This document shows, in pieces, positions 14,432 to 16,394 of a stretch of 40,900 bases of DNA. The first letter of the stretch is position 1. Every line of letters begins with the position of its first letter. The notes under the pieces are model-generated. The model did no database searches. It was not told where the DNA came from and saw nothing but the letters and a program-made list of their open reading frames with translations. The position numbers were made by a program, and so were the translations under genes. The stretch lies in sequence record NC_003214.2. One strand, 5' to 3'.

Positions 14432-14733
14432 GCTGTAAGTAAAATTTCATTTTTTAATAGTTGGTTTACACTCATTCCTCTTCTCTTCAGCTCGTTTTTA
14501 ATTATTAACTCATTCTCTTTCTTCATGTGAACCTGTAACCTGACGTATTCCTTTTCTCCTACTCTTATTATGACATTTTTCACGTTCTCTTTCCTATACG
14601 ATTTCGTGTCATCTTCAATATTGAAGTAGTTTAACAATAGTTGGCGTAAAACGGCGGATACACTTGTTTCTCTTCTTTCTGCTTCTTCTCTCAACCTATC
14701 ATACAACGACTTTTCAATCGTTACTATCATCAC
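14428..14733 (-). CDS. avtR: AvtR-like duplicated RHH regulator (~100 aa; GTG 14733 or ATG 14730)
   Basis: TSVSAVLRQLLLNYFNIED and ENELIIKNELKRRGMSVNQLLK match my recollection of AFV6 AvtR; divergent gene arrangement. Confidence 0.82.
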   Translation of the reverse strand: MMIVTIEKSLYDRLREEAERRETSVSAVLRQLLLNYFNIEDDTKSYRKENVKNVIIRVGEKEYVRLQVHMKKENELIIKNELKRRGMSVNQLLKNEILLTA

Positions 14734-14757
14734 ATGTCACTAATAAAATTATTACAT

Positions 14758-14818
14758 CACAAATTTAAAAACTTTGTACTACCCACAAGTTTAAAAATGT
14801 GATATCACAATTATAAAT
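14758..14818. promoter_or_regulatory. Divergent promoter: three CACAA-TATA direct repeats and the perfect palindrome TGTGATATCACA (14798-14809)
   Basis: cacaaatttaaaaa 14758, cacaagtttaaaaa 14784, cacaattataaa 14806. Confidence 0.78.
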
Positions 14819-15109
14819 ATGCAACTTAAAGCCACAAGTTTTAGGGCGAATGAAAAAATAATATTCGTGTTAAATTCTAATAAACTTTTTTGTGAGACTT
14901 ACGACGAATTTTTAAATAGATTAATTGATGAATGTGAAGGAGCAATAAATTACGCTAATAACGACATAACTGAAACCTTATCGATTTATTCTTTCAAACT
15001 ATCTTCAGAAACGATTGGGAAACTTAGCACAATAGCAAAAAAATATAGAATTTCTAGAAGTGAAGCTTTCCGAAAATTGATAATAGCAAAGGCTGAGGGG
15101 CTGTGTTAA
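14819..15109 (+). CDS. Probable tandem RHH regulator (96 aa)
   Basis: SIYSFKLSSETIGKLSTIAKKYRISRSEAFRKLI is a classic RHH; the N-terminal half is a weaker copy. Confidence 0.78.
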   Translation: MQLKATSFRANEKIIFVLNSNKLFCETYDEFLNRLIDECEGAINYANNDITETLSIYSFKLSSETIGKLSTIAKKYRISRSEAFRKLIIAKAEGLC

Positions 15110-15160
15110 TTGCACAAGTTATCAAAAAAGGGTGGTATATAGACTTCAAGGTGAGTTCAC

Positions 15161-15490
15161 TTGTCGACATCCCAACAAAATACTTACTCTACACAAAAAC
15201 AATCGGTGAAGAAAAGTATGGCACAGACGCTATGTGTCACATTGTCTTTCCGTTACGACGAATGGAGCCATCCTTTATTCGTGGAGGGTACAATTTGCCA
15301 ACCATTGACAAACGAAAAAGACCAAATCAAGGAGATGGAGGAGGAATTAGAGGACATGATATTGGATCTGTTTGGTATTCAAGTATTATCTTTATTAGAG
15401 GACGAGGGGGTATGGTATGGGGGTGCAGTGGGACGACGGATTACATGGTACCACCGGTATCCGGGAGACGGGGGAGAGTATACATGGTAG
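15161..15490 (+). CDS. Acidic hypothetical protein (109 aa, TTG start)
   Basis: AGGTGA SD 6 nt upstream; its stop overlaps ATG 15484. Confidence 0.7.
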   Translation: MSTSQQNTYSTQKQSVKKSMAQTLCVTLSFRYDEWSHPLFVEGTICQPLTNEKDQIKEMEEELEDMILDLFGIQVLSLLEDEGVWYGGAVGRRITWYHRYPGDGGEYTW

Positions 15491-15900
15491 ACGCTAAACA
15501 GATATTGAAGCTTGATATTGATGTTGACGTGAACTTCTATGATCCTAATTGGCTTCTCCAGAAGAAATTAGATATGTTACACGCACTAGGATATCAAGAA
15601 GAAGAAGCATGGTGGGAATATTCGCCGTCAGGAAAACATATTCATGTAATCATCGTCCTAAAGGATCCCATTTCTACTAAGGAGTTGTTTGATCTTCAGT
15701 TCCTATTAGGAGACGACCACAAACGCGTTTATTTCAACTATCTGAGATATTCAGTAATGAAGGAAGACGCGGTACACTTTAATGTACTTTATACGTATAA
15801 GAAGTCTTTAACTTTCTCTGATAAACTCAAGGCTATTTTTCGACATTGGTTTAAGTCAAAGCAGTACTCAAAAAACCTAAGACTAGGACAAACAACGTGA
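15484..15900 (+). CDS. Minimal AEP (primase-polymerase)-like catalytic domain (138 aa; frame open back to GTG 15103)
   Basis: ILKLDID (motif I), YSPSGKHIHV (motif II), LGDD (motif III candidate). Confidence 0.65.
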   Translation: MVDAKQILKLDIDVDVNFYDPNWLLQKKLDMLHALGYQEEEAWWEYSPSGKHIHVIIVLKDPISTKELFDLQFLLGDDHKRVYFNYLRYSVMKEDAVHFNVLYTYKKSLTFSDKLKAIFRHWFKSKQYSKNLRLGQTT

Positions 15901-15986
15901 TATAGTTTACCTGGGATTTCTTCAACAATTGCATAACGTACGAGAATTTTCCCTTCTCCTGCCCACCCTTCTTCTGTAATTCTCAT
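15789..15986 (-). CDS. 65-aa protein resembling a HicB antitoxin N-terminal domain
   Basis: IVEEIPGKLYHVVCPSL...FDLNQCRKIA pattern; ATG ~26 nt below the bidirectional TATA at 16011-16024; 3' end antisense to 15484-15900. Confidence 0.55.
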   Translation of the reverse strand: MRITEEGWAGEGKILVRYAIVEEIPGKLYHVVCPSLRFFEYCFDLNQCRKIALSLSEKVKDFLYV

Positions 15987-16043
15987 ATCATCATACTTAT
16001 CGGGGGCACAAAATTTAAATATTTTGTATCCATACTATCATGT

Positions 16044-16394
16044 ATGGGAGAAGAAAATATTGAGTTGCCTGAAGGCAACAATAAATCGGAAACAGAAAAA
16101 TACATAGAAGACTTGATAAATTCCATAGAAAGTGAACTACCAAAGCACGTAAATTATACAACAGGGATAATTGTTGATGACGAAAGGAATCTGCTAATTA
16201 TAAAGAACGGGAAGTTACATGTAGGTAGAGATGAAAATAATGCAAAAGAAATAAAAGAGTATGTAAAAGATGCTAATGCGGGATATTTGATCAATGCTTT
16301 ATACGTCTTAAAACAAATGTTAGCGTCATATAAAGACCTATGGTCAGGAAAAATAGAAAGAGAAGCGAAAAAGGCATTAAACGAAATAATCTAA
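16044..16394 (+). CDS. Hypothetical protein (116 aa)
   Basis: Leaderless, 23 nt after TTTAAATA (16014-16021). Confidence 0.85.
   Translation: MGEENIELPEGNNKSETEKYIEDLINSIESELPKHVNYTTGIIVDDERNLLIIKNGKLHVGRDENNAKEIKEYVKDANAGYLINALYVLKQMLASYKDLWSGKIEREAKKALNEII

Follow-up and report, generated by a model that had tools for sequence, protein, structure and literature searches.

Probable same-strand dual coding at the gp30 locus of the archaeal lipothrixvirus SIFV

The DNA stretch analysed here (40,900 bases, hereafter the window) is the complete genome of Sulfolobus islandicus filamentous virus (SIFV), a lipothrixvirus of an archaeal host (AF440571.2 / NC_003214.2, 100% identity), and our subject is its gene SIFV0030, or gp30, together with a second open reading frame (ORF) that lies inside it. 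We consider it likely that the region 15161-15490 is read twice on one strand, for one protein in frame 0 and for another in frame +1, each with an independent start. The enclosing frame (frame A) is SIFV0030 itself, a 265-residue ORF annotated as a hypothetical protein (15103..15900, + strand, as are all features described below unless stated otherwise), and the embedded one (frame B) is a 109-residue ORF (15161..15490), +1 relative to frame A, with a TTG start and a TAG stop (15488-15490). Frame A runs for 127 stop-free codons from GTG 15103 before it reaches ATG 15484, i.e. two ORFs in different frames of one strand are both open over a long stretch, as is the case in embedded overlapping genes. 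Among the ORFs of the genome that have at least 100 amino acids (55 occurrences), SIFV0030 has the longest alternative open run on the same strand, 111 codons; the next longest has 84, and the median is 42.

The initial annotation of the window had recorded the long frame A and its total length, frame B with a Shine-Dalgarno (SD) site and a stop overlapping ATG 15484, a frame A start that overlaps the stop of the upstream 96-residue gene behind GAGGGG, and a G-rich overlap, and it had proposed overprinting of the two frames. All of these features were found at the coordinates given, and overprinting is supported by the frame-specific diversity and by the avoidance of stop codons in both frames that are described below. 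As to composition, the GC content is 0.58 at 15400-15499 versus about 0.33 in the flanks (the genome has about 33% GC), and the GC skew of this segment is +0.45 to +0.60.

Frame-specific constraint and avoidance of stop codons

The mean pairwise nucleotide diversity was determined for each codon phase in 7 viruses. Over the first part of the ORF (nucleotides 0-120) the most variable site is position 3 of frame A (0.34-0.46, the other phases being at 0.11-0.26). Between nucleotides 120 and 385 it is position 3 of frame B, i.e. position 1 of frame A (0.29-0.49, the others mostly at 0.03-0.20), and from nucleotide 390 onwards it is again position 3 of frame A (0.45-0.59, the others at 0.02-0.33). 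Across 10 betalipothrixviruses the switches are sharp, and they fall at 15224/15225 and 15484/15487. The gene is made up of three abutting constrained segments: an N-terminal module in frame A (A-N, residues 1-41 of gp30, 15103..15225), a core in frame B (residues 22-109 of B, i.e. 88 amino acids, 15224..15487), and a small domain resembling archaeo-eukaryotic primases (AEP-like), again in frame A (residues 128-265 of gp30, i.e. 138 amino acids, 15484..15900). Since the variable site within 15224-15487 is frame B position 3, the middle third of gp30 evolves as B and not as frame A.

For a stop codon to arise in frame A, a B codon with T as its last base must be followed by one that starts with AA, AG or GA. 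In 16 pooled genomes, T was found at 0 out of 323 B third positions at which its presence would produce a frame A stop (TAA, TAG or TGA), as opposed to 333 out of 1001 other B third positions at which T would be synonymous (Fisher, 2e-48; the pooled sequences are related to each other, with at least 8 divergent lineages contributing). As T amounts to 33% at these other B third positions, base composition cannot explain its absence from the sites at risk. The same avoidance of T was seen in three further loci. Given the B protein and the codon usage of SIFV, the chance of frame A staying open is 1e-4 to 5e-6 per virus, and a conservative test, in which synonymous codons were shuffled within the gene, gave probabilities from 0.05 to <0.001. 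Frame B in turn is open over the 21 codons between its TTG and its core, even though frame A is constrained there (P = 0.009-0.20 per lineage), and the third frame contains 2-13 stops throughout. Judged by these comparisons, both frames are kept open in diverged relatives beyond what chance would give, and frame B is very unlikely to be a chance shadow ORF.

The long frame A ORF is annotated, at 252-267 residues, in six betalipothrixvirus records (SIFV2, AFV9, AFV7, AFV8, AFV6 and AFV3). These six, SIFV and three IMG/VR viral genomes form our close set (10 genomes, 11 with the locus L033). About 19 genomes or lineages have the two frames open, and among the relatives examined only one lineage does not. 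In the loci L023, L024, L027, L028, L030, L031, L033, L034 and L035 frame A is open from an A-N-like module through B into the AEP-like domain. In the distant loci B shows about 40-50% identity, and gp30 goes down to 33% identity. A long form of 252-271 residues is present in more than 60 distinct metagenomic protein clusters. The initial annotation had named the conservation of stop codons across relatives as a check, and upstream of 15484 frame A proved free of stops in all but the exceptional lineage, L025/L026.

In this lineage (L025:589-1394) there is a single-frame protein of 155 residues, which consists of a 42-residue extension and the B core, and the alternative frames are full of stops. 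The protein matches the B core with an hhalign probability of 95% (E 5e-9), colinear from residue 43, and is followed by a separate primase-like gene of 113 amino acids at an ATGA junction. This layout shows B to be a genuine protein and the short primase-like form to be capable of existing by itself; the layout also hints that the N-terminal module and B may belong together. In our search for further single-frame relatives only L025/L026 were recovered, and in the protein database this is a singleton lineage. A metagenomic hybrid A-to-B protein of 130 residues (P0026, L032:397-789), in which a 1-nucleotide deletion brings frame A and the C-terminal third of B into one reading frame, was set aside; as its contig has only 876 nucleotides, the deletion probably reflects faulty assembly or a defective genome.

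Start signals and domains of the two frames

Frame B is preceded by AGGTGA (15149..15154), an SD-type site 6 nucleotides before the TTG, and the TGA contained in this site closes frame B upstream. The arrangement AAGGTG-N6-TTG is found in 10 out of 10 close betalipothrixvirus genomes, and in L033 as well. In frame A the same bases are read as Lys-Val and Leu, by way of minority codons (in SIFV, AAG makes up 35% of the Lys codons, GTG 16% of the Val codons and CTT 19% of the Leu codons). In SIFV3/L027, GGTGA-N5-TTG is retained despite different frame A residues. A TTG is found at the equivalent place in L023, L024, L028 and L031, together with an SD site in L028 only. In Sulfolobales, GGTG-type sites serve the internal cistrons of operons, which fits the position of frame B. 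The embedded gene B, as far as conservation of these motifs can tell, has a translation start signal of its own. A different kind of dual start was observed in L030 (~568-572), L034 (1501-1507) and L035 (752-758), where the sequence ATGTATG places an ATG of frame B 4 nucleotides after the ATG of frame A; here frame B is open across the whole of A-N, and the arrangement differs from the SD and TTG of SIFV.

At its other end, the stop of frame B overlaps the frame A ATG 15484 in the sequence ATGGTAG. An ATG or a GTG is found 4 nucleotides before the frame B stop in 11 out of 11 close genomes. ATG 15484 could serve as an internal start, and a short form of 138 residues, made by termination and reinitiation at ATGGTAG, is possible.

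Frame B can be divided into a tail and a core. The tail (residues 1-21, 15161..15223) is rich in Ser, Thr and Gln, poorly conserved and predicted to be disordered, and it overlaps the constrained end of A-N. The core has 53 invariant columns in 9 genomes, including an invariant W-S-H-P (B residues 35-38, 15263-15274), and is predicted to be an alpha/beta domain with the order beta-beta-alpha-beta-beta-beta. Frame B is annotated in none of the SIFV, SIFV2 and AFV3/6/7/8/9 records, i.e. a conserved core gene for 109 residues has been overlooked in them. In metagenomes, on the other hand, profile searches recovered homologues of frame B that had been called as proteins, and also stand-alone or long forms of the primase-like gene. 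The isolate SIFV3 (OP999015.1) shares 99% identity with the locus L027, and the record of this isolate lists B as ORF13, with the same TTG, and a 5'-truncated frame A as ORF14, both as hypothetical proteins. The two ORFs (L036, 871-1580) overlap by 241 nucleotides, and frame A is open for 72 codons upstream of the annotated ORF14 start, where it reaches an A-N-like module. We found no discussion of the overlapping ORF13 and ORF14 in the SIFV3 paper.

The structures of B and of the frame A protein were predicted from equally shallow alignments (9 rows each). The B model has a mean predicted local distance difference test score (pLDDT) of 74; the core (residues 21-109) is at 75-90, and the first 20 residues are disordered. 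Fold and sequence searches did not give B a name. Foldseek found nothing in the PDB at E ≤ 0.001, the wide VIA search reached at most Z 5.3, with T-fold enzymes, which is within the noise range, and the shape search of the ESM Atlas returned unnamed clusters only. There was nothing real in the searches of PHROGs, NCBIfam and PDB sequences, and no usable match in the language-model search. The best PDB sequence match (E 0.008) is spurious, because W-S-H-P corresponds to the Strep-tag II of tagged entries. The best named match in BFVD, AFV2 ORF286b (E 0.038), was rejected as it shows no sequence or profile similarity to B, and AFV2 furthermore has no homologue of B or of gp30.

The start of frame A overlaps the TAA (15107-15109) of the upstream gene SIFV0029. 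This GTGTTAA-type overlap is kept in 10 genomes, its start-type codon being (A/G/T)TG. The purine run GAGGGG, which resembles an SD site and precedes the frame A start (15095..15100), is present only in SIFV, SIFV2 and AFV9; AFV3/6/7/8 carry GAAGAAAC in its place, and translational coupling to the upstream gene is therefore the more general inference. The residues of A-N are conserved in all relatives. Its model, a beta-hairpin followed by a helix, is of low confidence (pLDDT 34-45), and when A-N alone was compared with the protein atlas the scores were 0.79 or less.

Between A-N and the AEP-like domain, frame A encodes a stretch of 86 amino acids (residues 42-127, 15226..15483) that we call the tether. 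It is rich in Gly and Arg, stop-free and predicted to be disordered: residues 50-120 have a pLDDT of 20-26, and residues 1-129 of gp30 are all below 50. The most variable site of the tether is frame A position 1, and its residues are essentially unconstrained. The profile PHROG 12608 (267 positions) was built on the frame A protein over its full length and takes in the 86 residues of the tether, where the sequence evolves as frame B. It was also observed that Pfam PF22989 matches a frame A fragment (protein P0017). PHROG 12608 and similar models may mix a real domain with unconstrained sequence, and PF22989 may be another such model; family models and structure predictions of gp30 would in this way be misled by a middle third that evolves without constraint on its residues.

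The AEP-like domain carries three motifs, K-x-D-x-D, S-G-x-H and G-D-D-x-K-R, that do not vary among 16 sequences; the invariant residues include, in the numbering of the 138-residue form, K9, D11, D13, G50, H52, G76, D77 and D78. The motifs of AEP proteins are D-x-D/E (I), s-G-x-H (II) and an acidic residue (III), and in these 16 sequences all three are present in the proper order. The model of the domain (pLDDT 58-81) has an RRM-like beta-alpha-beta-beta-alpha core, and the best structural matches of this core are generic ACT/RRM folds (Z 5-6.6). The match to phrog_1829, 'DNA primase', is weak (E 0.014-0.034) and covers 35 residues only, the language-model look-alike 'AEP-like PF24387' was found at 0.90 with 165 shared features, which is under the usual 170, and the match to an AEP-TOTE cluster has a TM score of only 0.34. 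There was no match to the domain in an NCBIfam profile search, nor in a PDB sequence search with a single sequence and with a profile, and the N-terminal alpha/beta unit of the two-module AEP fold was not identified in the model, which is of moderate quality. The domain is thus similar to the AEP or primase-polymerase domains of mobile elements in as much as D-x-D, S-G-x-H and G-D-D follow each other in this order on an RRM-like core, but it differs from them in that the core has only about 110 residues and that neither the profile nor the structure comparisons linked it significantly to an AEP. As the motifs fit but the matches to primases are not significant, membership in the AEP superfamily is plausible and unproven.

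Proposed arrangement and its alternatives

According to the arrangement that we favour, translation of gp30 (265 residues) would start at the overlap with the stop of the upstream regulator, and the protein would consist of a 41-residue module, a flexible tether of 86 residues and the AEP-like domain, the sole constraint on the tether being freedom from stop codons. Protein B (109 residues) would start at TTG 15161 behind its own AGGTGA and would consist of an unconstrained tail of 21 residues and a folded domain of 88 residues. The two frames would in this manner take turns, with a constrained domain in one frame lying opposite a spacer in the other. Ribosomes that end B at TAG 15490 might restart at ATG 15484 and give a third product, the primase-like form of 138 residues. 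Both frames are probably translated, and the long form would be the functional primase-like protein. B may work together with gp30, the one basis for this being that B is always directly upstream of, or inside, the primase-like gene. The initial annotation had interpreted the overlap in terms of long and short primase-like isoforms. Forms of 265 and 138 residues are still possible, but B itself, with its own SD and TTG, appears to be a separate and better-conserved protein and not an isoform.

There are several points that weigh against dual coding. Firstly, within the overlap each frame is constrained only where the other frame is a spacer, and the evidence for the tether consists of stop avoidance and of a modest drop in diversity at four-fold sites (0.43 vs 0.67, n=15 each). 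Secondly, abutting constrained segments in frames 0, +1 and 0 are also what one would expect from frameshifting, and the 42-residue extension before the B core in L025 has the same length as A-N. Thirdly, the start signals vary in the distant loci: L023, L024 and L031 have the TTG without a recognisable SD site, and L030, L034 and L035 are without a TTG at this place, with other in-frame starts in frame B. Finally, we found no proteomic or ribosome-profiling data for either frame in the literature, and in complex predictions the B core gave ipSAE values of 0.01 and 0.00 with A-N and the AEP-like domain, a result which we list here even though it is evidence neither way.

It is tempting to speculate on how the two products of the dual-coding region might cooperate. 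B could serve the small AEP-like enzyme as a subunit, or supply the N-terminal module that this enzyme lacks; A-N would dock on B, and the tether would physically link B to the catalytic domain. We regard this as a rather unlikely scenario, but if a split or tethered primase of this kind were real, a single DNA stretch would code for a subunit and at the same time for the leash by which it is held. In a more radical variant, the three abutting segments would be joined into one chain by frameshifting.

The initial annotation had also suggested a frameshift product that joins the N-terminus of frame A to frame B. In its explicit form, a programmed +1 frameshift at around 15224, ribosomes starting at GTG 15103 would make a fusion of A-N and the B core of about 130 residues, unshifted ribosomes would make the 265-residue protein, and the N-terminus would be common to both. 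The constrained frame does change within 1-2 nucleotides where A-N ends and the B core begins, the 21-residue tail of B is not conserved, and the 155-residue protein of L025/L026 has the B core from residue 43, exactly as in such a fusion; however, the extension of L025 has no detectable similarity to A-N (hhalign probability 0.8%). The junction, TAY-GGN-ACA-RAC, offers no conserved shift-prone site as GGN is freely variable, and neither a frame-0 stop nor any other signal for pausing is present. Downstream, RNAalifold gave -7.9 kcal/mol with compensatory changes in 0 out of 15 pairs, and there was no Rfam match. The A runs, with 4-5 nucleotides, are too short for transcriptional slippage. Moreover, frame B is open for 21 codons upstream of the junction up to a conserved SD and TTG, and frame A is kept open downstream, neither of which a frameshift would need. 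As there is neither a slippery site nor an RNA structure, and both frames are kept open needlessly from its point of view, we disfavour the fusion and consider it improbable.

Slightly less probable still is the possibility that there are just two ordinary adjacent genes, B (15161-15490) and a primase-like gene for 138 residues (15484-15900), and that frame A owes its upstream part to an artefact of annotation, no long protein being made. Metagenome gene callers often predict exactly B and a 138-residue gene, the distant L025 has such a layout with its ATGA junction, the A/GTG located 4 nucleotides before the B stop is conserved, and the tether is predicted to be disordered and has unconstrained residues. 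On the other hand, A-N evolves as coding sequence of frame A, behind a conserved start-type codon that overlaps the upstream stop, and two ordinary genes would not account for T being missing from just the 323 sites at risk when it reaches 33% at the other B third positions. Furthermore, in about 19 genomes A-N is never followed by a stop, and translation of A-N must therefore continue into the AEP-like domain. Finally, the view that frame A as annotated is the only real gene, and frame B a shadow ORF without function, agrees with the current annotation of SIFV, SIFV2 and AFV3/6/7/8/9 and with PHROG 12608, which models the full frame A over 267 residues, but it is very improbable given that 15224-15487 varies at the third position of frame B while the first position of frame A is the most variable one, that the B core has its 53 invariant columns and folds at pLDDT 75-90, that its homologue is a stand-alone single-frame gene in L025, and that SD and TTG are conserved.

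Known overlapping genes and neighbouring features

The overlapping genes of viruses have been reviewed (PMC8227390, PMC6195259). For dual coding at gp30 we found no published description, including for archaeal viruses, and a search for literature on the gp30 gene, on frameshifting or overlapping genes in lipothrixviruses and on a lipothrixvirus primase gave nothing relevant. The closest known kind of arrangement are the embedded same-strand pairs.

It is instructive to compare gp30/B with the best known pairs of this kind, Rz/Rz1 of phage lambda and A/B/K and D/E of phiX174. The general features are similar, i.e. the smaller gene lies in the +1 frame of the larger one, has its own start signal, and both frames are open. 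In addition, gp30/B shares with them one compositionally odd, disordered frame, as is commonly seen in whichever member of an overlap is younger or under less constraint. There are, however, a number of differences. SIFV is a lipothrixvirus of an archaeal host, the embedded B is folded and constrained over most of the overlap, and the enclosing gp30 contributes a stop-free tether only. Constraint alternates between the frames of gp30/B with almost no doubly constrained stretch, and a functional link between its products is hypothetical.

A second group of comparable systems are the frameshift-linked pairs, such as G/GT of the phage tail chaperones and tau/gamma of dnaX; a -1 frameshift is also known in fucA1 of Saccharolobus solfataricus. 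Like gp30/B, these have two open frames on one strand and a shared N-terminal coding segment, and L025 provides a case with the parts in one frame. The underlying arrangement is different in as much as gp30/B switches frame without a conserved slippery sequence or stimulatory structure, B has a conserved start of its own, and frame A stays open for 86 more codons into a conserved domain.

If our reading is correct, gp30/B would be a clear and deeply conserved case of a rare type, i.e. of dual coding over a long stretch of one strand, and its evolutionary signature is clean. Betalipothrixviruses are, to our knowledge, model hyperthermophilic archaeal viruses whose replication proteins are unknown. 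B is in the tightest linkage with the only primase-like candidate of this group, and this might provide a lead on the replication of their linear genomes.

As regards the surroundings, the gene upstream of gp30, SIFV0029 (14819..15109, 96 residues), carries the annotation of a transcriptional regulator. In antisense, SIFV0031, an ORF of 65 residues (15789-15986, - strand), overlaps gp30 at its 3' end. A counterpart of SIFV0031 is not annotated at the same place in SIFV2 or in AFV3/6/7/8/9, for which reason it may be a spurious call. Among public RNA sequencing runs, none was found to contain the gp30 region. In public sequencing data in general, the best holder of positions 14700-16100 was the run X1, with 0.36 of the sampled words. 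This run is labelled as a mouse gut metagenome, an odd origin for a virus of hot-spring archaea, which suggests contamination or mislabelling.

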